From: Macrostomum lignano
Lineage: Eukaryota
Direction of reading: 5' to 3'
NCBI GenBank assembly: GCA_002269645.1
Contig: NIVC01003120.1
Location: 1-49,060, forward strand
DNA: 49,060 nt
Part shown: positions 8,543-47,510 of the stretch, in pieces
How positions within the stretch are numbered: the first letter of the stretch is position 1
Layout of the letters: every line of letters begins with the position of its first letter
Made by a program: the position numbers and the translations under genes
The notes under the pieces: generated by a model
The model's input: the letters and a program-made list of their open reading frames with translations, nothing else
What the model was told of the DNA's origin: nothing
The model's database searches: none

Positions 8543-8689
8543 CTGCTTCGATAATTAAAGACTGGTTTTCAGCCACCGCCCCTCGCTTCTCAGTAAATAT
8601 ATATTGGGGGATTAATTATATACTTTTGGTAAACTTCTGCTGATCGTTTTAATTGTTTTCACAAACGATGTCTCTCACTGTCCTCACCT

Positions 8690-9075
8690 CACCTCACCGA
8701 TATAGACTATAGACTGTACACAGGAATGTACATTGGCATAGCAGCTCTGACCTCACCGATATAGACTATAGACTGTACACAGGGAATGTACATTGGCATA
8801 GCAGCTCTGACCTCACCGATATAGACTATAGACTGTACACAGGGAATGTACATTGGCATAGCAGCTCTGACCTCACCGATATAGACTATAGACTGTACAC
8901 AGGGAATGTACATTGGCATAGCAGCTCTGACCTCACCGATATAGACTATAGACTGTACACAGGGAATGTACATTGGCATAGCAGCTCTGACCACACCGAT
9001 ATAGACTATAGACTGTACACAGGGAATGTACATTGGCATAGCAGCTCTGACCACACCGATATAGACTATAGACTG
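8690..9075. repeat. 60-bp tandem repeat, about 6 near-identical copies
   Basis: Successive 60-nt lines are essentially identical. Confidence 0.97.
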
Positions 9076-9606
9076 AATCTACAGTGTACACAGGAAGTTT
9101 CCACGGAGATTTACCTGTTTCATATTTGAAGTTCTGAGGTATATGTTACCTTTAATGTACACGTCAGATGTTAATAGTATAAAATATTTGCAGCACAAAT
9201 TTTTATTTGAATCAATAAACCAGTGAAAGCAGACGCTGATTTCACACGGGATGTGTCAAGAGTTGATACTCAATTATCAACTTCTGAATACATAAATCAG
9301 GTGGTTTGAAAACAGACAAAATTGAAATTGGAAAGAAGAGAATACAGAAAAACTAATTTCATAATTATCCGGTGAACAATTTTTTTGCTATTAGTAAAGC
9401 TAGCAAAGCAACTGGAGAAAGCAGGGTGACGACGGCAGCTAAATACGAGCAAATACCGACAAGCAGCCCTGCTTCTAAGAGAAAACAGAGATGTAATAAC
9501 CAAATAGAAATCTGAATAAGTGATGAAATTTGTGGCACTTTTTAATTTATAGCACTGAATCCAGGCAACCAGGCCAATCAGATATCATTTTGCACCTCTG
9601 TCTAAT

Positions 9607-9862
9607 ACCAGCTCCCCAGTGTCTAACGGCAGCTCCCCAGTGTCTAATGGCAGCTCCCCAGTGCCTAATGGCAGCTCCCCAGTGCCTAATGGCAGCTCCC
9701 CAGTGTCTAATGGCAGCTCCCCAGTGCCTAATGGCAGCTCCCCAGTGTCTAATGGCAGCTCCCCAGTGTCTAATGGCAGCTCCCCAGTGTCTAATGGCAG
9801 CTCCCTGTGTCTAATGGCAGCTCCCTATGTCTAATGGCAGCTCCCTATGTCTAATGGCAGTT
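9607..9862. repeat. 21-bp minisatellite (CCAGTGTCTAATGGCAGCTCC) overlapping the RBCK1 stop codon and 3' UTR
   Basis: Tandem periodicity. Confidence 0.93.
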
Positions 9863-12800
9863 CATGCAGTTCGGGTGGCACCTCTTGTTGTTCACCCGGC
9901 AGCGGCAGCCGCCAGAGGTGTCACCCTGGCCGCCGGGTCCCCAGCGCGGGCCGCGGGTGGCCCAGCAGATCTCGGTGCGGCACACGGAGCACATCAGCCA
10001 GTCGCAGCCTTCGCGCTTGGAGAGAAACACCTGGCATTTGGGGCACTTCATGGCCTCTCCGGACTGCAGCATGTCCTGCACGATTCGGGAGTGACATTGG
10101 GAAACCAGTTGCAGTTAGTCTGCTATCCTATAAACTTTACACATGGTGTCACTCAATCAGTCAGTGTCACTCAATCAGCCAAGGCTGTCACTCCATCAGC
10201 CAAGGCTGTCACTCCATCAGCCAAGGCTGTCACTCCATCAGCCAAGGCTGTCACTCAATCAGCCAATAGTGTCAATCAATCAGCCAATAGTGTCAATCAA
10301 TCAGCCAATAGTGTCACTCAATCAGCCAATAGTGTCAATCAATCAGCCAATAGTGTCACTCAATCAGCCAATAGTGTCACTTAATCAGCCAAGGTGTCAC
10401 TCAATCAGCCAAGGTGTCACTCAATCAGCCAAGGTGTCACTCAATCAGCCAAGGTGTCACTCAATCAGCCAAGGCTGTCATTCCATCAGCCAAGGCTGTC
10501 ACTCAATCAGCCAAGGCTGTCACTCAATCAGCCAATAGTGTCATTCCATCAGCCAAGGCTGTCACTCAATCAGCCAAGGCTGTCACTCAATCAGCCAAGG
10601 TGTCACTCAATCAGCCAATAGTGTCAATCAATCAGCCAATAGTGTCAATCAATCAGCCAATAGTGTCACTCAATCAGCCAATAGTGTCACTTAATCAGCC
10701 AAGGTGTCACTCAATCAGCCAAGGTGTCACTCAATCAGCCAAGGCTGTCATTCCATCAGCCAAGGCTGTCACTCAATCAGCCAAGGCTCTCACTCAATCA
10801 GCCAATAGTGTCATTCCATCAGCCAAGGCTGTCACTCAATCAGCCAAGGCTGTCACTCAATCAGCCAATAGTGTCACTCAATCAGCCAATAGTGTCACTC
10901 AATCAGCCAAGGCTGTCACTCAATCAGCCAAGGCTGTCACTCAATCAGCCAATAGTGTCATTCCATCAGCCAAGGCTGTCACTCAATCAGCCAAGGCTGT
11001 CACTCAATCAGCCAATAGTGTCACTCAATCAGCCAATAGTATCACTCAATCAGCCAAGGCTGTCACTCAATCAGCCAAGGCTGTCACTCAATCAGCCAAG
11101 GCTGTCACTCAATCAGCCAAGGCTGTCACTCAATCAGCCAAGGTGTCACTCAATCAGCCAAGGTGTCACTCAATCAGCCAAGGCTGTCACTCAATCACTC
11201 ACCTCCAGTTTCTGCAGTCCCAGCTTGGCATTCTCGTCGTTCTCAGCGCGCCTGCGCAGGTCGTCCTGGTATTGCTGGCAGGTGAGGTCCTTGTGGGAGG
11301 CCCTGCAGGTGACGCAGTTGTGCTCCTGGCACACCTCGCACTCAAACTCGTTAACATTGTCCACCAGTTCAACGAATGCCTCGCAGTTTGGCGTCACGCA
11401 GTGGAAGGCGTTGGTGATGACGGCCTCGGCCTGGCGGAGCCCCAGCCGCTGCAGCCTGGCCAGCTGCTCATCGGTGAGCAGCTCCTTGAGCTCGGCCTCG
11501 GTGACAGTCTGCTGGCACGGCTCGCACGGGCAGATGACGGGCAGCCGGTCGGAGTTGAGCGCGTGGTCCCTCAGGCAGTTCTCGCAGACCTCGTGGCCGC
11601 ACTCGCGCAGCCGCAGGCCCCGGATGCCGTCGCCGTCGTCATCGTCGCCGCCAACGTCGCAGAGGCAGATCGGGCACTCGAAGCCCTGCTGCGCCGGCAC
11701 GGGGATCAGCGAGCCCTGCGTCAGGTTCATGAGCTCGCGGAAGTTGCGCTCGCGCTCCCGCTCGGTCTGCAGATTGCGCAACAGGGGGGGGGGCAGTTCT
11801 GATTGATGAGGATTCCGGCTTCTCACCGTGCGACTGCCCGCAGGTGTACTTTAGGCCCAACCCCAGTGCCGCATTAATGTAAACTAAGCCAGCGGGCTTC
11901 CAGTCTTTCCTGCCCTTCAGGCACACTTTCGGCATTTAAATAGCGGTCACTGTGTCCCTGGAAATTCACTCTTGTCACTGTGTTCCTGGAAAGTCACTCC
12001 GTCACTGTGTCTCTGGAAAGTCACTCCGTCACTGTGTCTCTGGAAAGTCACTCCGTCACTGTGTCTCTGGAAAGTCACTCCGTCACTGTGTCTCTGGAAA
12101 GTCACTCCGTCACTGTGTCTCTGGAAATTCACTCCATCACTGTTTCTCTGGAAAGTCACTCCATCACTGTGTCCCTGGAAATTCACTCCCTCACTGTGTC
12201 TCTGGAAAGTCACTCTTGTCACTGTGTCTCTGGAAAGTCACTCCGTCACTATGTCTCTGTAAATTCACTCCCTCACTGTGTCCCTGGAAAGTCACTCCGT
12301 CACGTGTGTGGAAAGTCACTCTGTCACGTGTGTGGAAAGTCACTCCGTCACTGTGTCTCTGGAAAGTCGCTCCGAGCGTATTCCGAGAGGTCAATCAGCA
12401 AGATTCCTGGTAACGGTGCAATATTGGAAATTCACACCATCAGTCCAACTGATAAAGGCAAATTTGAGAAGTCAGCCAGCCTGCTTAGATCTGTGCAGTC
12501 AGCCGTTCATTGTCAAATAATAAATTAATGCCTGTGAAGAATAGCAGAGGTTTCGTATTAGGTATTTTTTGAGAGAAAAATTTCTTAGACCAAAAAAATC
12601 TGTTTTATATTTCACGGATTACCAAACGTGTCTGAACTTTGTGCTAGGAAATTAGGCAGCTATTGGCCAAGTGGGGACAATATCCACTTTGGAGAGTAAT
12701 AAAAACACTGGATAACCGCATGGCAAGCAAAGAAAATGATAAGAGATAATAGCAAAAAGATTCGAAAAAAGTGTACACGAATTACAGTTACAGAGGCAGA

Positions 12801-15800
12801 TTTACAGAAACAGAAACAGGGGATCTCAGCGCTATCAGGACACCGGTGAACAGGTGATCTCAGATGTCAGGACACCGGTGAACAGGTGATCTCAGATATC
12901 AGGACACCGGTGAATAGGTGATCTCAGATGTCAGGACACCGGTGAACAGTTGATCTTAGATATGAGGATACCGGTAAACAAGTGATGTCAGATATGAGGA
13001 CACCGGTGAACAGGTGATGTCAGATATCAGGACACCGGTGAACAGGTGATCTCAGATATCAGGACAACGGTGAATAGGTGATCTCAGATATGAGGATACC
13101 GGTGAATAGGTGATTTCAGATATCAGGACACCGGTGAAAAGGTGATCTCAGATATGAGGATACCGGTGAATAGGTGATTTCAGATATCAGGACACCGGTG
13201 AACAGGTGATCTCAGATATCAGGACAACGGTGAATAGGTGATCTCAGATATGAGGATACCGGTGAATAGGTGATTTCAGATATCAGGACACCGGTGAATA
13301 GGTGATCTCAGATATGAGGACACCGGTGAACAAGTGATATTAGATATGAGGACACCGGTGAACAGGTGACCTCAGATATCAGGACACAGGTGAATAGGTA
13401 ATCGCAGATATCAGGACACCGGTGAACAGGGGATCTCAGCGCTATCAGGACACCGGTGACAGGTGATCGCAGATATCAGGACACCAGTGACAGGTGATAT
13501 CAGATATTAAGATACCGGTGAACAGGTGATCTCAGATATCAGAACACCTGTAAACAGGTGATCTCAGATATCAGAACACCGGTGACAGGGAATCGGAACG
13601 CATCTTAGGGCATATTGTCACAGTGCTATCACAATGCCATTTGTAAAAGAAGTTCAATAAGATTCCAATGAGGTAGTGGAACACTATGGGTCAGCAGCTT
13701 CGCGAGGTTCATCCGCCTTGTTCTCTTCATCATCCGAGTCGCTGCTGCTGGAATCCGCGGCGGCGGCGGTCATCGGGTTTCTCAGAGCCCGGCGTCTCAA
13801 TGTAGCTCTCTGTGGGATCGGTTGCGCTGGTCTGAGGACTTGGCCCCGCATTTGCCTTGCTTAAAAAAACATTTCCACTTTTTAAAAGCGCATGTACAAA
13901 ACAGTGCAGTTCTGCCGCTCGGCTCTCAGCTTAGTCGCGGAGCTCGATCGCTGATTGGCTGTCAATCTAGCTTTTCAGGCTTCTGATTGGCTGCTTGGGT
14001 CACTACCCCTGCCCCAGGTAATCTAACCCTGCCCCAGCTAATCTACCCCTGCCACAGCTAATCTACCCCTGCCACAGCTAATCTACCCCTGCCACAGCTA
14101 ATCTATCCCTGCCACAGCTAATTTACCCCTGCCACAGCTAATCTACCCCTGCCACAGCTATTCTACCCCTGCCACAGCTAATCAACCCTTGCCACAGCAA
14201 TTCTACCCCTGCCACAGCAATTCTACCCCTGCCACAGCTATTCTACCCCTGCCCCAGCTAATCTACCCCTGCCACAGCTATTCTACCCCTGTCCCAGCTA
14301 ATCTACCCCTGCCACAGCAATTCTACCCCTGCCACAGCTAATCTACCCCTGCCACAGCTATTCTACCCCTGCCACAGCTAATCTACCCCTGCCGCAGCTA
14401 TTCTACCCCTGCCACAGCTAATCTACCCCTGCCACAGCTAATCTACCCCTGCCACAGCTATTCTACCCCTGCCCCAGCTAATCTACCCCTGCCACAGCAA
14501 TTCTACCCCTGCCACAGCTAATCCACCCCTGCCACAGCTATTCTACCCCTGTCCCAGCTAATCTACCCCTGCCACAGCAATTCTACCCCTGCCACAGCTA
14601 TTCTACCCCTGCCACAGCTAATCTACCCCTGCCACAGCTATTCTACTCCTGCCACAGCTATTCTACCCCTGCCCCAGCTATTCTACCCTTGCCCCGGCTT
14701 AAAAATTGTTCACCTGCAGCAAGAAATCAGCCCCTAGAACAGTCAGGCAAAGCAGGGACTCGCAACTCACGAATTTAAGAAATTCGCCGTGCAGCTTCAG
14801 CTGCCGCTGCTCCTCTTCTGCCTGCAGCTCCGCCGGCACCTCGTAGTCGGGCGGCCGCGCCCCACCGCACATCTGGCAGCCGGGCCGCACCGGCTCGTTG
14901 CGGAAGGTGCACTGGGGACAGCTCCAGCCCGGCTGCGGGGCGGAGAGGGCGGAGAAGGCGACGGTAACGTGACGCATTAAAGGATGCAAATTCTGAGATG
15001 ATGGCACACATTAAAGGATTCTAAAATGGCGGCACACATCAAATGATTCTTCTAAAATGGCGGCACAGATCAAAGGATTCTAAAATGGCGGCACATATCA
15101 AATGATTCTAAAATCGCGCACACAAAAAAGGATTCTAAAATTGCGGCACACATCAAAGGATGCAAATCGAGATAGCGGCACGCATCAAAGGATGCGACGA
15201 ATCGAGATGGCGGCACACATCAAAGGGTGCAAATCGAGACGGCGGCACACATCAAAGAATCCTGAATGGTGACATGCATCAAATCATACAAATCGAGATG
15301 GCGGCACACTTCAAAGGATGCAAATCGAGACGGCGGCACACTTCAAAGGATGCAAATCGAGATGGCGGCACACATCAAAGGATGTAAATCGAGACGGCGG
15401 CACACATCAAAGAATCCTGAAATGGTGACATGCATCAAATCATACAAATCGAGATGGCGGCACACTTCAAAGGATGCAAATCGAGACGGCGGCACACTTC
15501 AAAGGATGCAAATCGAGATGACGGCACACATCAAAGGATGTAAATCGAGACGGCGGCACACATCAAAGAATCCTGAAATGGTGACATGCATCAAATCATA
15601 CAAATCGAGATGGCGGCACACTTCAAAGGATGCAAATCGAGACGGCGGCACACATCAAAGAATCCTGAATGGTGACATGCATCAAATCATACAAATCGAG
15701 ATGGCGGCACACTTCAAAGGATGCAAATCGAGATGGCGGCACACTTCAAAGGATGCAAATCGAGATGACGGCACACATCAAAGGATGCAAATCGAGATGG

Positions 15801-17702
15801 CGGCACACATCAAAGGATGCAAATCGAGATGGCGGCACACTTCAAAGGATGCAAATCGAGATGACGGCACACATCAAAGGATGCAAATCGAGATGACGGC
15901 ACACATCAAAGGATGCAAATCGAGATGGTGGCACACATCAAAGGATGCAAATCGAGATGGCGGCACACTTCAAAGGATGCAAATCGAGATGGTGGCACAC
16001 TTCAAAGGATGCAAATCGAGATGACGGCACACATCAAAGAATCCTGAATGGTGACATGCATCAAATCATGCAAATCGAGATGGCGGCACACTTCAAAGGA
16101 TGCAAATCGAGATGACGGCACACATCAAAGGATGCAAATCGAGATGGCGGCACACATCAAAGGATGCAAATCGAGATGGCGGCACACTTCAAAGGATGCA
16201 AATCGAGATGACGGCACACATCAAAGGATGCAAATCGAGATGGCGGCACACTTCAAAGGATGCAAATCGAGATGACGGCACACATCAAAGGATGCAAATC
16301 GAGATGACGGCACACATCAAAGGATGCAAATCGAGATGGTGGCACACATCAAAGGATGCAAATCGAGATGGCGGCACACTTCAAAGGATGCAAATCGAGA
16401 TGACGGCACACATCAAAGGATGCAAATCGAGATGGTGGCACACTTCAAAGGATGCAAATCGAGATGGCGGCACACTTCAAAGGATGCAAATCGAGATGAC
16501 GGCACACATCAAAGGATGCAAATCGAGATGGTGGCACACATCAAAGGATGCAAATCGAGATGGCGGCATACATTAAAGGATGTGAATTCTGAGAGTTAAT
16601 GAAGTGAGCTATTTGAGTCACTCACTTCTTCTTCAACCTCAGGCTGCTGCGGCTGCGACGGCCCTACAGATCCTGCAGAGCCTTCATCGTATTCGGAATC
16701 CTCCCGGCGGATGACCTGCCGGTCCCGCTCGGCCCGTACAGCCGCCTTCAGCTGCTCGAGGTGATCCTTCTTTGGTGGCCAGTGCTCAGGATTCGATGTA
16801 ACCAGGTAGGTCAGCACCTGAGAGATTGGGGAATAAACAGATTTGGCATGCTCCAGGTCCACTTTGAGGACAAACACTCCGCATCATCATGGGATCGCAT
16901 ACTGAGCATCATGGGATCACACACTGAGCATCATCATGGGATCACACACATCAGCATCATCATGGGATCACACACACCAGCATCATCATGAGAACACACA
17001 TCAGCATCATCATGGGATCACACAGCCAGCATCATCATGGGATCACACAGCCAGCATCATCATGGGATCACACAGCCAGCATCATCATGGGATCAGTCAG
17101 CCAGCATCATCATGGGATCACACAGCCAGCATCATCATGGGATCACACAGCCAGCATCATCATGGGATCACACAGCCAGCATCATCATGGGATCACACAG
17201 CCAGCATCATCATGGGATCACACAGCCAGCATCATCATGGGATCACACAGCCAGCATCATCATGGGATCAGTCAGCTTTAGCAGTTCCGCAGTCCCCAAC
17301 CTTGAGCTCCTTAGTCTTGGTGAGCTCATCAAAAATCCTCTCATTGCCCAGCAGCTGGCCATCAGCCATGCACCGCTGAATCGCGGGCGGCAGGCCGAAA
17401 ACCAACAGCGTCTCGTCCTTCAGGTCGGCGATGCAGGCGGTCCGCGGCATGACGAGGCGCAGCGGGCCGCAGGAGCGAGAGCCACCAGCCTGCAGCGTCA
17501 GCGACACCAGCAGGCTCTCCTCAGGCAGGGCGCCACCGGAGGAGGTCGCGGCGCCCTCGGGTTCGGCGTAGGCGCGCAGGCTGAACAGCCGGGAGTTGGC
17601 GAGCTCCGCCGCCAGGCGCTGCGCCTTGTCTACGTTGCGCTCCGACAGAGCGGCGTTGAAGCTCTCAGAGAGGCGCCGGACACCGGCGGGCACCGTCGAC
17701 AT
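9851..17702 (-). CDS. RBCK1: HOIL-1L/RBCK1-like RBR E3 ligase (LTM-UBL-NZF-RING1-IBR-RING2), LUBAC subunit
   Basis: Exons (minus, all phase 0): 17702-17301, 16817-16626, 14932-14771 (3' boundary slightly uncertain), 11766-11203, 10075-9851. [27 protein letters not shown]; [17 protein letters not shown]...VLTYLV; [23 protein letters not shown]; RING1 [13 protein letters not shown]; [21 protein letters not shown]; RING2 [42 protein letters not shown], the diagnostic HOIL-1 C-terminus with the catalytic Cys intact. Confidence 0.95.
10145..11200. repeat. 20-21-bp minisatellite (GTCACTCAATCAGCCAAGGCT) in last RBCK1 intron
   Basis: Tandem periodicity. Confidence 0.96.
11945..12370. repeat. 27-bp minisatellite (GTCACTGTGTCTCTGGAAAGTCACTCC)
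   Basis: Tandem periodicity; 9-aa repeating translations. Confidence 0.95.
12825..13590. repeat. ~32-bp minisatellite (CAGGACACCGGTGAACAGGTGATCTCAGATAT)
   Basis: Tandem periodicity. Confidence 0.95.
14000..14698. repeat. 20-bp minisatellite (CTACCCCTGCCACAGCTAAT)
   Basis: Column-aligned 20-nt periodicity. Confidence 0.97.
14975..16585. repeat. ~32-bp minisatellite (AAAGGATGCAAATCGAGATGGCGGCACACATC)
   Basis: Tandem periodicity with interspersed variant units. Confidence 0.96.
16880..17275. repeat. 25-bp minisatellite (CATCATCATGGGATCACACAGCCAG)
   Basis: Tandem periodicity. Confidence 0.95.
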
Positions 17703-17774
17703 GGCGAGGCGGAGATCAGCATGCAATAAATGCGGTTTTCCTGCTGCATTCTGACCTGCTTCTCGTTTTGGAGC

Positions 17775-19110
17775 AGTTCTCAGGATTTCTGGGCGGTCTT
17801 GGGGTTTCTGGGCGGTTCTCAGGGTTTTTTTGGCGGTTCTCAGGGTTTTTTGGCGGTTCTCAGGGGGGTTCTCAGGGCGGTTCTCGGGGTTTCTTGGCGG
17901 TTCTCAGCGTTTCTTGGCGGTTCTCAGGGTTTCTTGGTGGTTTTCAGGGTTTCTTAGTGGTTCTCAGGGTTTCTTGGTGGTTCTCAGGGTTTCTTGGTGG
18001 TTCTCAGGGTTTCTTGGTGGTTCTCAGGGTTTCTTGGTGGTTCTCAGGGTTTCTGGGCGGTTCTCAGGGTTTCTGGGCGGTTCTCAGGGTTTCTTGGTGG
18101 TTCTCAGGGTTTCTTGGCGGTTCTCAGGGTTTCTTGGTGGTTCTCAGGGTTTCTTGGTGGTTCTCAGGGTTTCTGGGCGGTTCTCGGGGTGGTTTCTGAG
18201 TGATTCTCAGGGTGGTTTCTGAGTGATTCTCAGGGTGGTTTCTGAGTGATTCTCAGGGTGGTTTCTGAGTGATTCTCAGGGTGGTTTCTGAGTGATTCTC
18301 AGGGTGGTTTCTGAGTGATTCTCAGGGTGGTTTCTGAGTGATTCTCAGGGTGGTTTCTGAGTGATTCTCAGGGTGGTTTCTGAGTGATTCTCAGGGTGGT
18401 TTCTGAGTGATTCTCAGGGTGGTTTCTGAGTGATTCTCAGGGTGGTTTCTGAGTGATTCTCAGGGTGGTTTCTGAGTGATTCTCAGAGTGGTTTCTTATT
18501 GATTCTCAGGGTGGTTTCTGAGTGATTCTCAGGGTGGTTTCTGAGTGATTCTCAGGGTGGTTTCTGAGTGATTCTCAGGGTGGTTTCTGAGTGATTCTCA
18601 GGGTGGTTTCTGAGTGATTCTCAGAGTGGTTTCTTATTGATTCTCAGGGTGGTTTCTGAGTGATTCTCAGGGTGGTTTCTGAGTGATTCTCAGGGTGGTT
18701 TCTGAGTGATTCTCAGGGTGGTTTCTGAGTGATTCTCAGGGTGGTTTCTGAGTGATTCTCAGGGTGGTTTCTGAGTGATTCTCAGGGTGGTTTCTTATTG
18801 ATTCTCAGGGTGGTTTCTGAGTGATTCTCAGGGTGGTTTCTGAGTGATTCTCAGAGTGGTTTCTTATTGATTCTCAGGGTGGTTTCTGAGTGATTCTCAG
18901 GGTGGTTTCTGAGTGATTCTCAGGGTGGTTTCTGAGTGATTCTCAGGGTGGTTTCTGAGTGATTCTCAGGGTGGTTTCTGAGTGATTCTCAGAGTGGTTT
19001 CTTATTGATTCTCAGGGTGGTTTCTGAGTGATTCTCAGGGTGGTTTCTGAGTGATTCTCAGGGTGGTTTCTGAGTGATTCTCAGGGTGGTTTCTGAGTGA
19101 TTCTCAGGGT
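17775..19110. repeat. Compound array: 20-bp TTCTCAGGGTTTCTTGGTGG (to ~18185), then 23-bp TTCTCAGGGTGGTTTCTGAGTGA
   Basis: Tandem periodicity with an abrupt unit switch. Confidence 0.96.
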
Positions 19111-19449
19111 GGACAAAATAAAAAGTATGCCGTTTTTAGCTTTGTTAGTTATAAAAGATTATGTATATAAAATTTATTTACTACACTGGATGTGCGATGC
19201 AACATTGTTTAAAGTAGGTTACCTTAACCTCAATAAAATATCTGGCTAAAATAGCACGAGCAAGGCGATAAAAAACGCGATGAGATTTGGACTGTCAGAT
19301 GACACGAAATCATGTTCAAGGATGTTATTTATGGATGAATAGATCAAAACACCAGCGCACCTTTCTACCTGGCATTCAATAATTGGGGAGGCTGTGCATA
19401 CGGCTGCTGTTATAGGCGAACAGGCGTTACAGTAACAGCTTATTCTGTC

Positions 19450-20210
19450 AAGCAGGTGTTACAGGGGTTATGTCTAACAGGTGTTACAGGGGTTATATCT
19501 AACAGGTGTTACAGAGTTTCTGGGAGATGTGTCTAACAGGTGTTACAGGGGTTATATCTAACAGGTGTTACAGAGTTTCTGGGAGATGTGTCTAACAGGT
19601 GTTACAGGGGTTATATCTAACAAGTGTTACAGAGTTTCTGGGAGATGTGTCTAACAGGTGTTACAGGGGTTATATCTAACAGGTGTTACAGAGTTTCTGG
19701 GAGATGTGTCTAACAGGTGTTACAGGGGTTATATCTAACAGGTGTTACAGAGTTTCTAGGAGATGTGTCCAACAGGTGTTACAGAGTTTCTAGGAGATGT
19801 GTCTAACAGGTGTTACAGAGTTTCTAGGAGATGTGTCTAACAGGTGTTACAGAGTTTCTGGCAGATGTGTCTAACAGGTGTTACAGAGTTTCTGGCAGAT
19901 GTGTATAACAGGTGTTACAGAGTTTCTGGTAGATGTGTCTAACAGGTGTTACAGAGTTTCTGGCAGATGTGTCTAACAGGTGTCACAGAGTTCCTGGCAG
20001 ATGTGTTTAACAGGTGTTACAGAGTTTCTAGGAGATGTGTCTAACAGGTGTTACAGAGTTTCTGGCAGATGTGTCTAACAGGTGTTACAGAGTTTCTGGC
20101 AGATGTGTCTAACAGGTGTTACAGAGTTTCTGGCAGATGTGTCTAACAGGTGTTACAGAGTTTCTGGCAGATGTGTCTAACAGGTGTTACAGAGGCATTC
20201 TGTCTAACTG
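19450..20210. repeat. ~34-bp minisatellite (TCTAACAGGTGTTACAGAGTTTCTGGCAGATGTG)
   Basis: Tandem periodicity. Confidence 0.95.
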
Positions 20211-20489
20211 GTACAAAAGCGGCACCAGAGCAGCGTCCATCTGCTAAAATTTTTGAAAATAATAATAAAAAACTAGGAAATAAGAAAAATAAGAAATTGT
20301 AATTATTTACACTACAAATCAAGCATTAAAAATGGCAAATCGCAGAGGTGAAAAAAATCAAAGTGAATAAGAACTGGAATTGCGAATCGCAGTTGACAAG
20401 CGGCTGTTCCTCGTGTGCCATCAGTCCTGCAATTTCAGGTGGGACAACACAAATATGATAAATTACTCTGAGTCCGAGACTTCGAATGG

Positions 20490-21690
20490 ACTAGCAATCC
20501 ACTGTGACTAGACTAGCAATCCACTGAGACTAGACTAGCAATCCACTGTGACTAGACTAGCAATCCACTGTGACTAGACTAGCAATCCACTGAGACTAGA
20601 CTAGCAATCCACTGTGACTAGACTAGCAATCCACTGTGACTAGACTAGCAATCCACTGAGACTAGACTAGCAATCCACTGAGACTAGACTAGCAATCCAC
20701 TGTGACTAGACTAGCAATCCACTGTGACTAGACTAGCAATCCACTGTGAATAGACTAGCAATCCACTGTGAATAGACTAGCAATCCACTGTGACTAGACT
20801 AGCAATCCACTGTGACTAGACTAGCAATCCACTATGACTAGACTAGCAATCCACTGTGACTAGACTAGCAATCCACTGTGAATAGACTAGCAATCCACTG
20901 TGACTAGACTAGCAATCCACTGTGAATAGACTAGCAATCCACTGTGACTAGACTAGCAATCCACTGTGAATAGACTAGCAATCCACTATGACTAGACTAG
21001 CAATCCACTGTGACTAGACTAGCAATCCACTGTGAATAGACTAGCAATCCACTGTGACTAGACTAGCAATCCACTGTGAATAGACTAGCAATCCACTGTG
21101 AATAGACTAGCAATCCACTGTGAATAGACTAGCAATCCACTATGACTAGACTAGCAATCCACTGTGAATAGACTAGCATTCCTCTGTGAATAGACTAGCA
21201 ATCCACTGTGACTAGACTAGCAATCCACTGTGAATAGACTAGCAATCCACTGTGAATAGACTAGCAATCCACTGTGAATAGACTAGCAATCCACTGTGAC
21301 TAGACTAGCAATCCACTGTGAATAGACTAGCAATCCACTGTGAATAGACTAGCAATCCACTGTGAATAGACTAGCAATCCACTATGACTAGACTAGCAAT
21401 CCACTGTGAATAGACTAGCAATCCACTGTGACTAGACTAGCAATCCACTGTGACTAGACTAGCAATCCACTGTGAATAGACTAGCAATCCACTGTGACTA
21501 GACTAGCAATCCACTGTGACTAGACTAGCAATCCACTGTGAATAGACTAGCATTCCTCTGTGAATAGACTAGCAATCCACTATGACTAGACTAGCAATCC
21601 ACTGTGACTAGACTAGCAATCCACTGAGACTAGACTAGCAATCCACTGTGAATAAACTAGCAATCCACTGTGACTAGACTAGCAATCCAC
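20490..21690. repeat. 22-bp minisatellite (GACTAGACTAGCAATCCACTGT)
   Basis: Tandem periodicity. Confidence 0.97.
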
Positions 21691-21700
21691 TATCACTCAC

Positions 21701-24207
21701 AGACGAAGAGCTGCCGTCCTGAACGAGCTGCAAACACGGAGGAGGCTGCGCCGGTCTCCTGTGCCCGACTGTCTGCTTTGCGCCCGACCGTGATGCAACC
21801 AGGCCGCGGGGCGGGCGCTTTCTGGCCGCAAATGGCAGCTGGAGAGGCGGCTGCGCATAATTCATCTGGCTGGTGACTCCCGCCACTGGGAGCCTGGGAG
21901 GCTTCTGCCAAAGGAGTAAAGGGAGGCTGATTGGCAACTTTTGAAAGTAGGTATTGACTGAGCACTCCTCACATCGATACAGGATTGACTGAGCACTCCT
22001 CACATCAATACAGCACTGACTCAGCACTCCTCACAGCAATACAGGATTGACTGAGCACTCCTCACATCGATACAGGATTGACTGAGCACTCCTCACATCA
22101 ATACAGGATTGACTCAGCACTCCTCACATCAATACAGGATTGACTGAGCACTCCTCACATCAATACAGCACTGACTGAGCACTCCTCACATCAATACAGC
22201 ACTGACTGAGCACTCCTCACATCAATACAGGATTGACTGAGCACTCCTCACATCAATACAGCACTGACTGAGCACTCCTCACATCAATACAGGATTGACT
22301 GAGCACTCCTCACATCAATACAGGATTGACTCAGCACTCCTCACATCAATACAGGATTGACTGAGCACTCCTCACATCAATACAGCACTGACTGAGCACT
22401 CCTCACATCAATACAGGATTGACTGAGCACTCCTCACATCAATACAGCACTGACTGAGCACTCCTCACATCAATACAGGATTGACTGAGCACTCCTCACA
22501 TCAATACAGCACTGACTGAGCACTCCTCACATCAATACAGGATTGACTGAGCACTCCTCACATCAATACAGCACTGACTCAGCACTCCTCACACCAATAC
22601 AGGATTGACTGAGCCTACAGTCCTCCTGCGAATATTATCAATAGTTTGATATTTTTACTTCAACTCGCACCTGCGATCGCAGCAACTCGCGCGGCAGGTC
22701 CCCGGGCTTCCCGGCGGCCAGCGGGCAGTTCTGCAGGGACAGCAGGAAATCCCGACTGTAGCAGATTCTCCTGCCGCCGCTGCCCGTCTGCTGCTGCCGC
22801 TGCTGCTGCCGCTGTTTCGCAGCCGGCACCGGCCGAAGCACTCGGAACAGCCCCCCAATGTGGCCTCTGCGCCGCTGTCCAGGCGACTCTCTGCTCTGCA
22901 AGCCGCTGCCTTTTTCGTCCGAAGACGCCCCGGACGAGGGCGCCGATTCGGGCCGCTCAGTGGCGCACATTTCGCAGCCGGGTCGGCGCCACCTGTTCCT
23001 GAAGGTGCACACCGGGCAGTCCCAGGTGCGCTGCGGCTGCTCGGCCTGTCATGGGGGTGGTGGGTACCAGAATCAATCAATTGTAGTCGATCGCCTACTG
23101 AAGAGTAGTAAGAACAGAATGTAAAGCGAATCTCTTATTGCTTGCCTAGTCAGGCATGCAGGCCTTACACTGTGCATATCTAGCCAGTACTAATACGCTC
23201 AACTGCTTTTCCATCCACTTACCACAGGCTCCATGGCAACGGGCACCGTTGCCGCGGGCACAGCTGGACTTGGCTCAGCATCCTCTTCTGCTGGTGGAGC
23301 TTCTGGCGCCGCTGCGGGCTGCGGATCGCCGAGCACGTACAGGTGCACCGGCTGAGTCTCGCTGACCGCCCCGAGATCTTTTAAGCACCTGGGAAGCAAC
23401 GATGATGACGGAGTTTTGCGTGGTTGGAATCAAAAAATGAAGCGTGGCCCAGCAACTGAGGATCTGGGAGGCTGGCCCAGCAACTGAGGATCTGGGAGGC
23501 TGGCCCAGCAACTGAGGATCTGGGGGGCTGGCCCAGCAACTGAGGATCTGGGAGGCTGGCCCAGCAACTGAGGATCTGGGAGGCTGGCCCTGCAAATGAG
23601 GATCTGGGAGGCTGGCTCAGCAGCTGAGGATCTGGGAGGCTGGCCCAGCAACTGATGATCTGGGAGGCTGGCCCAGCAGCTGAGGATCTGGGAGGCTGGC
23701 CCTGCAAATGAGGATCTGGGAGGCTGGCCCAGCAACTGAGGACCTAGAAGGGTAGCAGCAGGCGAGAAAAAATCACCTGTCGTCAGAAGCCAGCAGCCCG
23801 CCTGCGATCCAGCACTGCCGTCCGGGCGGTAGGTCCCGAGCTCGAGCCGCCACCCGGGCCCGCAGCTCGCCAATCCGAGTGTCGCCGCGCGCCATCAAGC
23901 GGAGCAGCTGGCGCGGCCGGCCGCGGCCCTCCAGGGCTACCGGCAGGGCGAACCAGCCGTCATCCAGCAGCGACCGCCGCGCGACCACTGGCGATTCTTC
24001 CTGCTGCTGCGGCATCGCCAGCGGAGGCGGCGCAGGCCGGATGTCCAGCTGGACGCGCCGTTCGCAGAGCAGCCGCGCTTGGCGAGCTGCCTCCTCGGCG
24101 TCGCCTGACTTGATGGCAGCTTCAAGGCGGGCCGCGGCCGATGAGACAGCTGGCCACCAGTCAGCAGCAACGCCCTTGGAAGCTGCGGTGGGACTGGGAG
24201 GCTCCAG
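21701..24207 (-). CDS. SHARPIN-like protein (LTM-UBL-NZF, no RBR seen) with a C-terminal eIF4E-binding-type motif; 5' and 3' ends uncertain
   Basis: Exons (minus): 24207-23777, 23388-23223, 23045-22671, 21904-21701; phases 2, 0, 0 match. LTM ARLEAAIKSGDAEEAARQARLLCERRVQLDI; UBL LPPGRQCWIAGGLLASDDRCLKDLG..VHLYVLG; NZF WDCPVCTFRNRWRRPGCEMCATERP; then RRICYSRDFLLSLQNCPLAAGKPGDLP. Confidence 0.85.
21952..22615. repeat. 31-bp minisatellite (GACTGAGCACTCCTCACATCAATACAGGATT)
   Basis: Tandem periodicity. Confidence 0.96.
23438..23745. repeat. 28-bp minisatellite (GATCTGGGAGGCTGGCCCAGCAACTGAG)
   Basis: Tandem periodicity, in the intron splitting the UBL. Confidence 0.95.
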
Positions 24208-27087
24208 CTGTAAAATAGAAGACTAGACTAGATGGCTGAATTCCAGAAAAGCCAATGCACAGTCCATAAAAAGATGGTCTTTTAACATGCAGATGCAGGC
24301 CACCTTTTAAAGTGGCAAATAGTTAGTAGTAATGCAACTAGGCCATAGGCCATAGCTAACCTATGTTTTATTTAAACTCAGGAAAATTGATTAATGGCTT
24401 GCTAATAGAATAATTAAAAGCCCAAAGCAATGTCTACAAAATATATATGCTAGCTAATGTAGTCTATTAGTATTAATTATTTAAAATGATTTAATTAAAA
24501 AAGAATGCAAATAGTAATTAGTTAGACTTATTAGTTATAAGTTAACCACCAGATTATTTTTTGTGTATTATTTTTTACACATGCCCCCCCAACATCATGT
24601 ATGTATTTCTACCAGATTGGAAACATAGTGTATACCTAAAAATGAAAAATATGAATATGAAAAAAGAGATAATTCAAAGGCACAATAAATGCTTTATAGT
24701 GAAGCAAAAATTGTTGAAAGGTATAATATGCTAAGTTAACATTTAATACCATAGCATAGACAAAAATATTTTTAAAAACTATTTATTAAAAGTTTTTTTT
24801 ATTTAAAAATATCTTGCTTCTAGTTCTCTTACATAGTCTACTATTTATTTCTTAATTTATAATTGTTATTTTATTCTTTTTAAAATGTTCATACAAATTT
24901 TGACTTGCTTTTTAGATAAATTTATTCAATTATTGTGTATATTAATTATGATCATAGTCCTTATAGTTATACGAAAATATACTACAAAAGTTAAAGAAAT
25001 TGTGACAATAAAATGGTCCAAACCTTTTTTTGCCTAGTCTGATTTTCATGAACTAAATTTATTTGAAAACCTTTCAATAAGATCTACACAATAGAATGCA
25101 AACATTTCCATATTTTTCAAATAAAAAAATCTTAGGACCCCTCTTATTATAATAAGTATAACTATAATATAAGTGGATTGATTCTTAAAATAATTTTTTT
25201 TTATACTGGATTAACAAATTAGTTGTTTGTTATTGTTATATTCTGAAATATAAATAATTACTCATAATTAAAAGATATACTTGTTTTAATATTAATATTA
25301 TACATTATATAAAATTAAATACAAGACTGCGACTGCGAGTGGTACATAGTAAAGGGGATAGGGAAGAAAGTAGATGTACCCACATATACTTGATAAGTCA
25401 GATTAACTTTAATGATAACCATTAACAAGACCATGGATCTTTCAAAGAGGCATGCTACCTACCTACTTCATCTCTTAGAAGTTAGATAGACTAGATATAA
25501 GATATCCCTCCTAAAAATATATAATTATGGCTATGCTATAAAAATTATGATATTGGGATTAAAAAGTTAGCATAAAAATACTTTCTTAGTAAGACTATTA
25601 GGTTACTTTGTAAGATTATCCTAAAAAATCGAGTTATCTTTTATTTTAATAGGCCTAACTCAGCATCCAAATATGAAAAAAACAACTTCAACGGCTTTTC
25701 AGCTTATTTTATAAAACATAATAGCTGATCTTTTCGCTATTTTATTAGCAAACATTGTGTTTTTTATCTAAATACTATGTGAGTCGGACCCATTTGGATG
25801 ATTTTTGAAAATCACCTGCTGTCCCTGCAATTTGAAAGCGAAAATAAATTCTGATTTCTAAACAAGGCATCAACTTGAAAAATATCATTAATGACATCTG
25901 ATCGGGAAAATTAGTTTTTAGTTAATAATTTGAGTTTCAAGCAGAAACGTAACTTTATGAAATTATGATTATGTTTTAAATGCTCTATTACTCTGTTTTA
26001 TTAGTAAATCTTATTACTCTCACGTTGTTATAACGATAAACGACGACATCTAACGGTGTGTAAAACAGTCATTTTAGCTAAAATTTACTCTTGTGGCGAT
26101 CGGACAGCTTCTTGTCTAAATAAGACCGTGCTTAAGGCACTGCAAAAAACAAGTCCTCCGCGAAATCTGTTCGGAAAACACAGTTTTCGTGTTGCCTAAC
26201 AATTGTCAACGACAATTATCTTAACAGCTGCAGAGGCAGGTCCCAGAATTTTTGTGTCGTCGGTCTCCATCCAGCTTTTAAAACCTCTTTAATCTCGGAT
26301 GAAAATATATACGTGTAGCTCGTAATTTCCTAACATGCAATGTCAGAAGAGAAAAACGCTTCTATCAGGACAAAGCTACATGTATATGTTACATGTACAT
26401 GTACATTGTATGGTTATACACCATGTCAATGTGTGTACTAGCTGTACATGTATACCCGTACATATAAGTATGTTTAGCCCTAGATTGTCAGGCTGAAAAG
26501 TACCTGATACATTCCAACCACGTCTTGTGGTGCTTGCATCTTTGATTGCAGTAACGTACAACTGCAAATATACGCAGGAATTTAAATTTGGAGGGGGCAA
26601 TTCCCCAACCCTATAATTGTGCAATTATTTGGTATCTTGGTACGTTAATTGGACGCCCTACGCTCGTAATGTACATGTACATGTATTGCTGAGATGTCAA
26701 GGGAATCATGGGGGGAATTCCTGAGATTTCATGGTTGAAGTCATGCTGAATCCATACGTAGTTTATTCAAAAAAATTATTCCATTCTTTGTTGGCTCCCA
26801 ACGGGGGCACAGCTAATTGCTAGTGTATCTCCTAAATGTGGGTAGGTTTAATCCCCCTGTCACTTGGTGGGCGCCCGGCGGTGTCTTGGTTGGCATTGGC
26901 ACCGATCTCTCTCTTTTCTTATGGTGGTCTCCCCACTTGGTAGGCGCCCCCTGACTCTCGCTGGGCGCGCCCCCTTCATTTCCAGGTCAGTGCCCTTCAC
27001 CCCCATATACATGTATCTTCTAGGCAATAGATATGGTACTCCTGTCTCGCTAAACTCGCTTAAACTAAATATCTTTTTGCGATCTAC

Positions 27088-28861: not shown

Positions 28862-29186
28862 TATGTTCTTGTGCATTCATATTTGATTTTGCGTGCAGAA
28901 TTGGCTACAATCTTGCACGCTCAAGCATGAAGTTGGAAGTATAAGGTCCAATGCATTAAAAGGTACAAGATTGAAATCTATTTTTAGAAATGGAAAACCC
29001 TCTTTTTCTCACCCCTGATCTCCCACCCTCTTCAACGTGCAGGATTGATTTTTCTATGGTCTAACTTCATGTATTGTCTCTGATTAAAATATAGAATCAA
29101 GTAAGAATGAGATTTTTAGCTAATTTTATGAGTTTATAAGTACTCAGTAGCTCTCGACAAACAAGGTAAGGCAAACACCAGCTACA

Positions 29187-29678
29187 ATGGCGCTAGAGCA
29201 AATTCTGTTGGTCCTGACTGTGTCCATCATTGCCGTGTGCGTCATCATCGGCTGGGCGTTGGCGGCAGTCTTTGTCCGCATCCTGTACTCCTCCCCTGGG
29301 GCCGACAGCGCCATTTCTCTTCGTCGCGGCGTCTTCACCCTGCCGCGCTCGAACTACAGGCCGCCGCCAGCGCTGCTGCGCCTGCGAAAGCCCGCCTCAG
29401 GCGACGATGCCACCCTGGAGCAGCGGTCTAAGGACAATCAGCAGGTGAACTGGTGCAACCACCGGCTACCCTACTGGCCCCTCGGACAGGATTGGCACCG
29501 ATTGGAGTCGCAAGTCAATTCCAGACTGCAAGTGCTGCGAGATTCAACTACTGTTAGTATTAATAGCAACTGCAATACAAACAACACCTGCATTGATTCG
29601 GTTGGATTGTCGTCCGGATTGCCTTCAGAGCCTGAGGCCATTCTCCTTCAGTACACCTTCCTGTACGATATGGTGTGA
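29187..29678 (+). CDS. Putative single-pass membrane protein, no family recognised
   Basis: 163-aa ORF with an N-terminal hydrophobic segment (ILLVLTVSIIAVCVIIGWALAAVFVRIL) and GC-rich exon-like codon usage to ~29445, where a possible CAG/GTGAAC donor lies. Confidence 0.5.
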   Translation: MALEQILLVLTVSIIAVCVIIGWALAAVFVRILYSSPGADSAISLRRGVFTLPRSNYRPPPALLRLRKPASGDDATLEQRSKDNQQVNWCNHRLPYWPLGQDWHRLESQVNSRLQVLRDSTTVSINSNCNTNNTCIDSVGLSSGLPSEPEAILLQYTFLYDMV

Positions 29679-46489: not shown

Positions 46490-46677
46490 GGCGCCGTGTC
46501 GCCTGATCACCCCATTGCCTCATTAATCAGAGGAGATTATTTAAAAACTCCCTAAACTTCCCACTAGATATCCTGTTGACTCTACTGTTAGTAGCGTGCA
46601 AAGTCTGTCATTTTTTGCAGTTGATGGACAATCAAAGTAGAAAGACGCTGCACTCACAAATCCTGCAACATTCGACA

Positions 46678-47477: not shown

Positions 47478-47510
<33 letters not shown>
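46678..47510. repeat. Imperfect (ATG/GAT)n trinucleotide microsatellite, ~830 bp
   Basis: Direct reading. Confidence 0.97.

Follow-up and report, generated by a model that had tools for sequence, protein, structure and literature searches.

A SHARPIN-like gene with a 4E-BP-type tail beside a HOIL-1L/RBCK1 orthologue in the flatworm Macrostomum lignano

Introduction

Vertebrate SHARPIN combines an N-terminal PH domain with an LTM, a UBL and an NZF, in that order, and lacks both an RBR and the tail helix found after the NZF of HOIL-1L (RBCK1). The human genes for SHARPIN and HOIL-1L lie on different chromosomes. To our knowledge, the LTM and the UBL of HOIL-1L/SHARPIN type have been assigned roles only inside LUBAC. 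Two unrelated systems offer partial parallels to the gene described below: in GIGYF2-4EHP-ZNF598 an adaptor associated with an E3 ligase uses a YxxxxL-type motif to hold a cap-binding protein, and in the ANKHD1-EIF4EBP3 read-through a 4E-BP module is joined to an unrelated upstream protein, although both differ in domains and ancestry and have no link to a LUBAC component. Among invertebrates, RNF31 is reported to be widely conserved across metazoans, Spiralia included (PMC12778051). In the mollusc Aplysia no stand-alone SHARPIN gene was found, and an RBR-less isoform of HOIL-1 (XP_035825204.1) has been proposed as a functional stand-in, which sets a spiralian precedent (PMC9334734).

The window analysed here is a complete contig of 49,060 nucleotides from the flatworm Macrostomum lignano, with two genes arranged head to tail on the minus strand. 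The downstream gene B is a full-length HOIL-1L/RBCK1 orthologue, and the upstream gene A is SHARPIN-like in architecture. We assign a probability of about 0.55 to the joint reading in which gene A, standing beside the HOIL-1L gene B, is an RBCK1-derived, SHARPIN-like gene that takes its start codon from the spliced leader, may be expressed together with B, and has a LUBAC-like function as well as a 4E-BP-type tail that tethers eIF4E.

Organization of the locus

Hand-built models of both genes use canonical GT-AG introns (Table 1), and the deposited M. lignano models match them at 100% identity (P0001 for gene A, P0004 for gene B). They agree with a preliminary description of this DNA, in which two LTM-UBL-NZF modules lay head to tail on the minus strand about 4 kb apart: from the gene B ATG to the last large coding exon of gene A there are 4.0 kb, and to the gene A stop codon 2.7 kb, the terminal coding piece of gene A having been placed with reference to where the gene annotated on a second contig, NIVC01004658.1 (L002), ends. 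Most of the spacer consists of minisatellites; the 3′ UTR of gene A is unique sequence down to about 20200, and between it and the gene B ATG the unique sequence amounts to only about 0.5 kb. A six-frame scan of the window returned exactly two NZF motifs, both on the minus strand and both keeping the CTF and RPGC(E/Q)MC motifs, as had been noticed at the outset; the RBR, likewise as first described, belongs to the downstream gene only.

The order A-then-B recurs on L002, where the locus is colinear with that of the window at 92-98% identity and the spacer measures 1.66 kb. The coding sequence of gene A is nucleotide-identical on both contigs and therefore gives no dN/dS signal. Another assembly yields gene models in which A and B are fused (P0003, P0030 and P0099). 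An assembly duplication was rejected, since genes A and B share only about 30% identity and the tandem is found again on NIVC01004658.1. That gene A might be a partial duplicate in decay, or an artefact of the assembly, without any function is scarcely credible: its annotation goes no further than a partial hypothetical protein and it has no genomic ATG ahead of its LTM, but its reading frame is intact over five exons with canonical splice sites, its LTM, UBL and NZF are confidently predicted with the ubiquitin-contact residues retained, the colinear second copy carries the same coding sequence, and such divergence between A and B speaks against a collapsed or duplicated assembly.

Table 1. 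Features of the locus, in window coordinates (a slash marks an exon-intron boundary)
Feature	Position	Strand	Description	Basis
Gene A	24207 to about 20421	-	5 exons, upstream of gene B	
Gene A first known exon	23777-24207	-	After acceptor ttttacag/ and in-frame TAG; LTM (about 24135-24028) and first two thirds of UBL; phase 2 end at donor GACGACAG/gtgatt	
Gene A exon 2	23223-23388	-	UBL end (…CLKDLGAVSETQPVHLYVLG) and Pro/Ala-rich linker	
Gene A exon 3	22671-23045	-	NZF, disordered spacer, 4E-BP-type eIF4E-binding region; donor CAG/gtgcgagt	
NZF of gene A	23024-22965	-	WDCPVCTFRNRWRRPGCEMC	six-frame scan
4E-BP-type region of gene A	22772-22674	-	In exon 3; canonical YSRDFLL at 22760-22740	
Gene A exon 4	21701-21904	-	KPPRLPVAGVTSQMNY…, LPVAGVTS stretch, then low-complexity tail	P0001 sequence
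Gene A terminal coding piece	20421-20426	-	GAC TGA after acceptor aaattgcag/; stop codon 20423-20421	
Most of A-B spacer	17776-20194	.	Three minisatellite arrays, periods 20, 23 and 34	
CATTTATTGCATG	17720-17732	-	12/13 terminal bases of the M. lignano spliced leader; also on L002	
Gene B	17702-9851	-	5 coding exons, 514 aa	
Gene B exon 1	17301-17702	-	ATG, degenerate LTM, most of UBL	
Gene B exon 2	16626-16817	-	Last UBL strand (VLTYLVTS) and acidic linker	
Gene B exon 3	14771-14932	-	NZF and start of HOIL-1L-type NZF tail	Pfam Zn_ribbon_RanBP E=7.8e-7
NZF of gene B	14926-14867	-		six-frame scan
Gene B exon 4	11203-11766	-	RING1 and IBR	Pfam IBR and RING matches
Gene B exon 5	9851-10075	-	RING2, catalytic-Cys context EGCDWLMC, C-terminal motif …CH, TAG stop	

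The HOIL-1L orthologue and the SHARPIN-like module

Gene B is 37% identical to fish RBCK1 over 98% of its length (E about 1e-102) and possesses every invariant Cys/His column of a 22-protein RBCK1 alignment, in which the catalytic-Cys context and the C-terminal motif of exon 5 are also invariant. Pfam matches its NZF and IBR, and RING1, RING2 and the C-terminal end are recognised as well. In its AlphaFold2 model, two helices at the N-terminus are followed by a UBL and an NZF, then by a long tail helix and the RBR. The N-terminal part is the weak one: the Pfam LTM model finds no match in gene B, and with profiles made from non-Macrostomum sequences only, its UBL and LTM reach 9.9 and 8.6 bits, which is weak yet above all 1000 shuffles. 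With the same profiles gene A scores 22.8 bits for the UBL and 20.2 bits for the LTM, again exceeding every one of 1000 shuffles. Gene A keeps the Trp that is conserved in the QRW motif, where gene B and P0007, the second M. lignano RBCK1 paralogue, both have a Cys.

The architecture of gene A is SHARPIN-like because its product is an LTM-UBL-NZF protein without an RBR. Pfam recognises the LTM (E=3.4e-6) and the NZF (E=1e-5), and AlphaFold2 predicts the three elements with high pLDDT (about 93 for the LTM, 81-96 for the UBL, 83-94 for the NZF), followed by a disordered tail. The top Foldseek matches of the model are HOIL-1L/SHARPIN LTM-UBL and UBL structures (5y3t, 4dbg, 5x0w), the best being the HOIL-1L LTM-UBL 5y3t_A, and the UBL superimposes on that of HOIL-1L (4dbg_A, TM 0.89) and on that of SHARPIN (5x0w, TM 0.83-0.86). 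Sequence comparison with the PDB retrieves the HOIL-1L NZF, the LTM-UBL of SHARPIN (chain 5y3t_C, E=9.6e-4) and of HOIL-1L, and 4E-BP1. As in SHARPIN, no HOIL-1L-type tail helix follows the NZF; unlike in SHARPIN, no PH domain was found in gene A, Pfam included.

A proposed start codon from the spliced leader

The mRNA model of gene A, P0001, starts precisely at the splice acceptor at 24207, a start point shared by the independent model P0099. Exon 1 opens in phase 0 directly behind this acceptor, which an in-frame stop precedes, and the first in-frame genomic ATG falls downstream of the LTM. The M. lignano spliced leader ends at its 3′ side in ATG, and exon 1 is in frame with this terminal AUG. 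The gene A mRNA would accordingly undergo trans-splicing at 24207, and its translation would begin at the leader AUG, giving M+LEPPSP…, a product that lacks a PH domain and folds first into the LTM at its N-terminal side. A flatworm spliced-leader AUG acting as initiator has a precedent (PMC9851317). The leader-like CATTTATTGCATG sits 18 nt upstream of the gene B ATG. As the spacer is short once its repeats are discounted, genes A and B may be co-expressed. Trans-splicing, the isoforms of gene A and co-transcription of A and B are all predictions.

A 4E-BP-type tail

The disordered tail of gene A, overlooked like the putative leader-borne start codon in the preliminary description, contains a 4E-BP-type eIF4E-binding region, RRICYSRDFLLSLQNCPLAAGKPGDLP, and then LPVAGVTS, which we take to resemble the non-canonical LPTIPGVTS of 4E-BP1. 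Exon 3 alone matches Pfam eIF_4EBP (PF05456) with E=3.8e-5 and 24.0 bits, exactly at the cut-off of 24, and the whole protein falls slightly below it, with 21.9 bits. The tail also aligns with the 4E-BP1 residues seen in the eIF4E complex 5bxv (chain 5bxv_B, E=0.014) and, in a library of 1.84 billion proteins, with the true 4E-BPs P0197 and P0200 (E=3.4e-4), being 57% identical to both motifs of the latter over 28-30 aa. Gene A thus shares with 4E-BP1/2/3 the YxRxFLL core, the following NxPL…P.DLP, a PGVTS-like element and predicted disorder, but it lacks the RAIP and TOS motifs as well as the TTPGGT or SP phosphorylation sites typical of true 4E-BPs, and its motif is joined to a 230-aa LTM-UBL-NZF module.

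It could be argued that the 4E-BP-like part is a separate product, made from an internal trans-splice acceptor in exon 3 with the leader AUG, in which case the deposited fusion model would be just one isoform or a chimera. In-frame AG sites do occur between the NZF and the motif, for instance ttgcag/AGCAGAGAG, the leader would provide the AUG, and the product, of about 140 aa, would be 4E-BP-sized. On the other hand, the stretch from NZF to motif runs through one exon without stop codon or UTR, the deposited model joins the two, and the N-terminal hallmarks of 4E-BPs are missing, all of which makes this explanation rather improbable.

Origin of gene A

The UBL-NZF regions of A and B are 29.5% identical over 122 aa, and the introns inside their UBLs differ in codon and phase, in keeping with the initial view of divergent UBLs, different introns and an old duplication. 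In neighbour-joining trees gene A joins gene B and P0007 in 79-87% of bootstraps, Dayhoff-6 recoding included, although these trees use about 158 columns and simple distance corrections, and all three Macrostomum sequences are long branches that may attract each other. Raw similarity speaks against this grouping, placing gene A no nearer to gene B (46.6 bits) than to sheep RBCK1 (63.5) or fish SHARPIN (55.5). Grouping with vertebrate SHARPIN, which had been named as the outcome contrary to the original proposal, occurs in at most 0.7% of bootstraps; once B and P0007 are removed, the share is still no higher than 16%. Vertebrate SHARPIN and RBCK1, about 40% identical, form a clade that leaves all invertebrate sequences outside in 60-78% of replicates.

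Gene A might instead be an ordinary SHARPIN orthologue whose adjacency to HOIL-1L preserves the original duplication arrangement. Its RBR-less domain order and its NZF without tail helix match SHARPIN, and in an exhaustive search vertebrate SHARPINs scored 53 bits against 40 for vertebrate RBCK1s. Nevertheless, the bootstrap values above, the vertebrate clade of SHARPIN and RBCK1, the missing PH domain and the lack of a reported stand-alone SHARPIN gene in Aplysia render orthology highly improbable; the 4E-BP-type tail and the HOIL-1L neighbour further set gene A apart from SHARPIN.

Since gene A groups with the M. lignano RBCK1 pair and almost never with SHARPIN, it appears to be an old SHARPIN-like offshoot of HOIL-1L, specific to its lineage, rather than a SHARPIN orthologue; it lacks RING1-IBR-RING2 and the NZF tail helix. 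Its ancestor would have been an RBCK1-type gene within the Macrostomum lineage, at a time before the two current RBCK1 paralogues separated, which would make gene A a convergent counterpart of vertebrate SHARPIN. Of the two origins first envisaged, re-invention in an invertebrate lineage therefore fits best, and retained ancestral linkage finds no support. Local duplication as a simple recent copy of B is not what the tree shows either, because gene A branches outside the B/P0007 pair and no A-like neighbour occurs within 10 kb upstream of the P0007 locus. A close parallel is the Aplysia HOIL-1 isoform, recovered as match P0178 in the library of 1.84 billion proteins: it is also a spiralian LTM-UBL-NZF product without RBR, but it is a splice isoform of a single HOIL-1 gene, whereas gene A is a gene of its own, strongly diverged and extended by an eIF4E-binding tail.

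Implications for LUBAC and translation

By analogy with mammalian LUBAC, the LTM of gene A would co-fold with that of a HOIL-1L (gene B or P0007), its UBL would dock on a HOIP-type UBA and its NZF would bind ubiquitin. No flatworm HOIP appeared among 132 matches to a human HOIP RING2-LDD query, a weak search in which 326 candidates were scored and mostly short fragments listed; the LUBAC partner, and with it the window as a 'LUBAC locus', is thus unproven. The same result can be read as a flatworm with neither HOIP nor LUBAC, where gene A, alone or with gene B, acts essentially as a 4E-BP-like regulator of translation that binds ubiquitin and may draw on the RBR activity of HOIL-1L itself. The complete RBR of gene B, with its catalytic-Cys context, and the eIF4E-binding core of gene A are in line with this possibility; however, such a search cannot show that HOIP is absent, RNF31 is reported to be conserved in Spiralia, and both LTM and UBL are well preserved in gene A. 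We hold it to be unlikely, though the strongest competitor of the joint reading.

For the RBCK1-derived, SHARPIN-like gene A beside HOIL-1L, we infer eIF4E tethering and a LUBAC-like function. Its YSRDFLL…LPVAGVTS tail would bind eIF4E in the manner of 4E-BPs, on both the dorsal and the lateral surface. If so, a ubiquitin-binding and ligase module would be brought to cap-bound mRNPs or, alternatively, eIF4E would be placed under ubiquitin-dependent control.

A HOIL-1L gene beside a SHARPIN-like gene

The locus is best read as a HOIL-1L gene next to an old, lineage-specific SHARPIN-like paralogue, which carries a 4E-BP-type tail predicted to bind eIF4E; the interpretation in the preliminary description is partly supported. 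The preliminary description had reported two head-to-tail LTM-UBL-NZF modules with an RBR in the downstream one only, an arrangement borne out by the gene models and the domain evidence, with the LTM and UBL of the downstream module weakly recognized, and the CTF and RPGC(E/Q)MC motifs are indeed kept in both NZFs.

Exons of the SHARPIN-like gene (gene A) and of the HOIL-1L gene (gene B), with the neighbouring genes
Feature	Position	Strand	Remark
Gene A exon 1	24207-23777	minus	
Gene A exon 2	23388-23223	minus	
Gene A exon 3	23045-22671	minus	
Gene A exon 4	21904-21701	minus	
Gene A terminal piece GAC TGA	20426-20421	minus	
Gene B exon 1	17702-17301	minus	splice sites read from sequence
Gene B exon 2	16817-16626	minus	splice sites read from sequence
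Gene B exon 3	14932-14771	minus	splice sites read from sequence
Gene B exon 4	11766-11203	minus	splice sites read from sequence
Gene B exon 5	10075-9851	minus	splice sites read from sequence
EF-hand gene and NAAA-like exon			
SLC22/MFS-type transporter gene			divergent from gene A
Acyl-CoA-synthetase-like gene			
Mariner/Tc1-type transposase ORF	28429-27356	minus	intact, 357 aa; Pfam Transposase_1, DDE_3, HTH

The five-exon model of gene B was built by hand from splice sites seen in the DNA, with GT-AG introns that are all in phase 0, and its 514-aa product equals the deposited P0004 (BOX15_Mlig014046g1, the 100%-identical protein of the free-living flatworm Macrostomum lignano that is its best database match) except for three N-terminal residues. 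Fish RBCK1 is 37% identical to it across 98% of its length (E ~1e-102). The RING1-IBR-RING2 region is recognized by Pfam IBR and RING matches and adopts an RBR fold in the AlphaFold2 model, RING2 contains the catalytic-Cys context EGCDWLMC, the C-terminus has the conserved GPRWGP…GDTSGGCRC zinc motif, and every invariant Cys/His/Trp column of a 22-protein RBCK1 alignment is found in the gene. Moreover, the NZF is followed by an RBCK1-type tail (RPPDYEVP…, of the pattern RP..Y.VP…), modelled as a helix at residues 229-266. The N-terminus is far more diverged than the rest of the protein. LTM and UBL profiles made without any Macrostomum sequence, from the SHARPINs and RBCK1s of other species, give it 8.6 and 9.9 bits, respectively, low values that nonetheless exceed all 1000 shuffles; the Pfam LTM model finds no match in gene B, and a PDB search with the N-terminal exon alone gave insignificant matches only. 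The AlphaFold2 model comprises two N-terminal helices (pLDDT 74-88), a UBL fold, the NZF, the long tail helix and the RBR. An exon-like ORF ended by a TAG (13687-13812, minus strand) lies behind the acceptor cccacag between the NZF and RING1 exons; it is included in ab initio models of other copies (P0005, P0003, P0011) and absent from the NCBI-deposited P0004. If this ORF is used in the present copy, the protein would end before the RBR, as a HOIL-1L isoform that resembles SHARPIN, like the one of Aplysia.

The exons of gene A reproduce the deposited 393-aa model P0001, and the best database match is a 100%-identical M. lignano protein. Pfam identifies the LTM (E=3.4e-6) and the NZF (E=1e-5), and the profiles from outside Macrostomum give 20.2 bits for the LTM and 22.8 bits for the UBL. 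Sequence matches in the PDB are the HOIL-1L NZF (2.5e-7) and the LTM-UBL parts of SHARPIN (5y3t_C, 9.6e-4) and HOIL-1L (5y3t_A, 0.021). All three domains are confidently modelled by AlphaFold2 (pLDDT ~93 for the LTM at residues 17-58, 81-96 for the UBL at 85-165 and 83-94 for the NZF at 205-232), with 5y3t_A, 4dbg_A (TM 0.89) and the SHARPIN UBL 5x0w as nearest structures. No RBR is present in gene A, which in this regard resembles SHARPIN, another LTM, UBL and NZF protein without RBR; SHARPIN, however, has an N-terminal PH domain that gene A seems to lack.

The start of the SHARPIN-like gene

Exon 1 of gene A begins directly after ttttacag, the preceding in-frame codon run begins with TAG, and the genome offers no in-frame ATG before codon 70, which lies beyond the LTM. 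Between exon 1 and the divergent transporter gene lies AT-rich or transposon DNA; no Pfam PH match was found for the gene, and tblastn of SHARPIN N-termini against 24208-30700 returned noise only. About 30% of the genes of M. lignano receive the spliced leader CGGTCTCTTACTGCGAAGACTCAATTTATTGCATG (PMC8629364), and when this leader is joined at 24207 the junction reads …ATG/CTG GAG…, in frame with the LTM. The use of the terminal AUG of a flatworm leader as initiator has a precedent in Cheng et al. 2006, as that work is cited in PMC9851317. P0007, the second M. lignano RBCK1, likewise carries the label partial, its model beginning directly behind a ctgcag acceptor, and the independent model P0099, from another assembly, starts at the same residue as gene A. 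The acceptor at 24207 with the TAG before it, the in-frame leader AUG, the precedent and the starts of P0007 and P0099 together argue that, most likely, the start codon is donated by the spliced leader and there is no PH domain. Gene A would in that case show how a leader-donated start codon gets a complete gene filed as partial.

Origin of the SHARPIN-like gene

P0007 (locus L001 on NIVC01000837.1, gene 10001-19087) is 46% identical to B, with 57-75% identity in the RBR and just ~28% in the LTM-UBL-NZF part. Its coding sequence is spread over four exons, with no intron in the UBL, and no A-like sequence lies within 10 kb upstream of its locus. The LTM, UBL and NZF of 28 proteins, namely vertebrate SHARPINs, vertebrate and invertebrate RBCK1s, hagfish short forms, A, B and P0007, were aligned for neighbour-joining trees with bootstraps, from either plain distances or Dayhoff-6 recoding. 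A joined the pair of B and P0007 in 86-87% of bootstraps with plain distances, 79% with Dayhoff-6 recoding and 86% on the LTM+UBL columns only, and B joined P0007 in 92-94% (plain distances) and 48% (Dayhoff-6). The alternative weighed in the preliminary description, in which A groups with vertebrate SHARPIN, had next to no support, appearing in 0-0.7% of bootstraps, a neighbour-joining value that is not final, and in 3-16% once B and P0007 were removed; vertebrate SHARPIN grouped with vertebrate RBCK1, all invertebrates outside, in 60-78%. This pattern favours independent origins, of SHARPIN on the vertebrate stem and of A in the flatworm lineage before the B/P0007 split, on a simple method in which all three flatworm sequences are long branches. 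Of the earlier reading, a clustered LUBAC locus of HOIL-1L and SHARPIN-like genes from local partial duplication, the HOIL-1L gene with an adjacent old SHARPIN-like paralogue stands. Orthology of the latter to SHARPIN is disfavoured by the neighbour-joining tree.

B does not stand out by raw similarity: A scores 46.6 bits with B, 63.5 with sheep RBCK1 and 55.5 with eel SHARPIN. An intron just before the NZF is common to A, B and P0007, whereas the UBL introns of A and B fall at different codons and phases, so that gene structure is compatible with a common origin of the flatworm genes and not decisive. A Cys instead of the conserved Trp in the QRW motif of the UBL unites B and P0007 only; its extension to A was dropped, as a second alignment shows the Trp in A (Q131-C132-W133). 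In the hagfish Myxine glutinosa, two RBCK1-like proteins (P0195 and P0229, 231-243 aa) consist of LTM-UBL-NZF only, without PH or RBR, and show a loose affinity to vertebrate SHARPINs, with bootstraps that vary from 22 to 67% between analyses. Neither Pfam nor BLAST supports a PH-like nature of the N-termini of cnidarian and rotifer RBCK1, under which SHARPIN and HOIL-1L would be two halves of a single ancestor.

A 4E-BP-type tail

Beyond the NZF, exon 3 of gene A continues through a stop-free spacer into RRICYSRDFLLSLQNCPLAAGKPGDLPRELLRSQ, and exon 4 goes on with KPPRLPVAGVTSQ…, so that the tail contains a canonical YxxxxLΦ eIF4E-binding motif in 4E-BP context, RRICYSRDFLLSLQNCPLAAGKPGDLP, followed by the non-canonical element LPVAGVTS. 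Pfam eIF_4EBP (PF05456) recognizes the tail with E=3.8e-5; the exon reaches 24.0 bits, exactly the cut-off of 24, and the whole protein 21.9 bits, under that gathering score. An exhaustive HMMER search of 1.84 billion representatives matched P0197 and P0200 through the gene A tail alone (E ~3.4e-4), and Pfam confirms both as true 4E-BPs (71.6 and 116 bits). By BLAST the tail is 57% identical over 28-30 residues to each of the two P0200 motifs, and its residues 286-318 can be aligned with human 4E-BP1 as found in complex with eIF4E in 5bxv. Like the 4E-BPs, which are disordered, the tail is predicted by AlphaFold2 to be so. True 4E-BPs, however, have RAIP, TOS and mTOR phosphorylation sites, and no RAIP, TTPGGT or FEMDI-like TOS motif is found in P0001, which argues that the tail is a borrowed core, predicted to bind eIF4E, and not a full 4E-BP. 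In the search of 1.84 billion proteins, a 4E-BP core combined with LTM-UBL-NZF occurs in M. lignano alone, and we know of no described fusion of this kind. The closest relatives of the tail, P0200 (locus L003, from a metatranscriptome) and P0197 (from a Logan assembly), have two tandem eIF4E-binding motifs each.

The tandem and its surroundings

That the tandem could be an assembly duplication, as the preliminary description had considered, is excluded by its recurrence and by the identity of A and B, which is only ~30%. On a second contig, NIVC01004658.1 (L002), the transporter gene, A and B (here 516 aa) follow one another as they do in the window, and the models P0003, P0030 and P0099 of another assembly run from the A tail into B, showing the A-then-B order again. 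Both contigs are colinear at 92-98% identity, with different minisatellite lengths, and the mariner element is absent from L002. The gene A coding sequence is identical between the two, which makes dN/dS impossible to obtain from them, and B differs at 6 synonymous and 4 non-synonymous codons.

Operons in M. lignano are defined by same-strand genes, a repeat-adjusted spacer of <1 kb and a trans-spliced downstream gene (PMC8629364). A and B share a strand, and the ~0.5 kb of unique sequence that separates the A 3' UTR from the B ATG once minisatellites are removed falls within that 1 kb. No good acceptor lies just upstream of the B ATG in the window sequence. The stretch CATTTATTGCATG at 17720-17732 (minus strand, also at 14893-14903 of L002), 18 nt upstream of this ATG, equals 12 of the last 13 spliced-leader bases, and its next base is not directly preceded by an AG acceptor. 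A trans-spliced cDNA may have left this stretch behind, or it may be due to chance, given that 11 of 100 shuffles of the window contained a one-mismatch match to the leader.

Every intron and spacer of genes A and B (8000-24000) contains a minisatellite of 20-34 bp period, with up to 55 copies at 83-99% matches, and differing array lengths account for most of the size difference from L002. GC content varies widely among the 2-kb blocks of the window. The mariner insertion, a stretch of ~1.9 kb missing from the otherwise colinear L002, is recent or polymorphic. A long imperfect trinucleotide-type repeat at 46541-47533, whose frames read His/Asp-rich, Ile/Thr-rich or Met/Val-rich, is probably non-coding simple sequence, and Rfam gave no matches in the window.

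A possible link between LUBAC and translation

It is established for mammals that HOIL-1L and SHARPIN co-fold through their LTMs and bind the UBAs of HOIP through their UBLs (PMC6044281; structure 5y3t). By analogy, gene A would pair with HOIL-1L, be it B or P0007, as well as with HOIP, and would bind ubiquitin through its TF/Met NZF; its 4E-BP core suggests that it could also hold eIF4E. The mollusc Aplysia yielded no SHARPIN gene, and a HOIL-1 isoform without an RBR has been proposed as its stand-in there (PMC9334734), so that the need for such an RBR-less partner of HOIL-1L seems general; this isoform, P0178, is among the matches of gene A. No flatworm HOIP appeared among the 132 relatives retrieved with human HOIP RING2-LDD (326 candidates scored), a search that reached arthropod, mite and crinoid (echinoderm) proteins and is too shallow to indicate absence. 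A literature search for RNF31 in flatworms found nothing. Wide conservation of RNF31 among metazoans, Spiralia included, has been reported (PMC12778051).

Gene A is of interest because it appears to have converged on a SHARPIN-like subunit and because of its unexpected predicted link to eIF4E. The boldest reading, a doubtful one to which we would give about one chance in five, is that of a SHARPIN-like subunit that a flatworm made independently, assembled from HOIL-1L and a 4E-BP module, started from the leader AUG and perhaps co-expressed with its LTM partner from a single transcription unit, which would physically couple a LUBAC-type ligase and ubiquitin reader to eIF4E. If true, Met1- or ester-linked ubiquitination would be tied directly to cap-dependent translation control, in an organism whose mRNAs carry two kinds of cap. 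The fusion offers a hypothesis linking ubiquitin-chain reading or writing to eIF4E that can be tested directly, since RNAi and transgenesis exist for M. lignano. Moreover, should the tree hold, HOIL-1L acquired LTM-UBL-NZF partners without an RBR more than once, as vertebrate SHARPIN, as the Aplysia splice isoform and as the separate Macrostomum gene, and such a repeated origin would suggest recurrent selection for a LUBAC architecture with two LTMs, and not a vertebrate accident.
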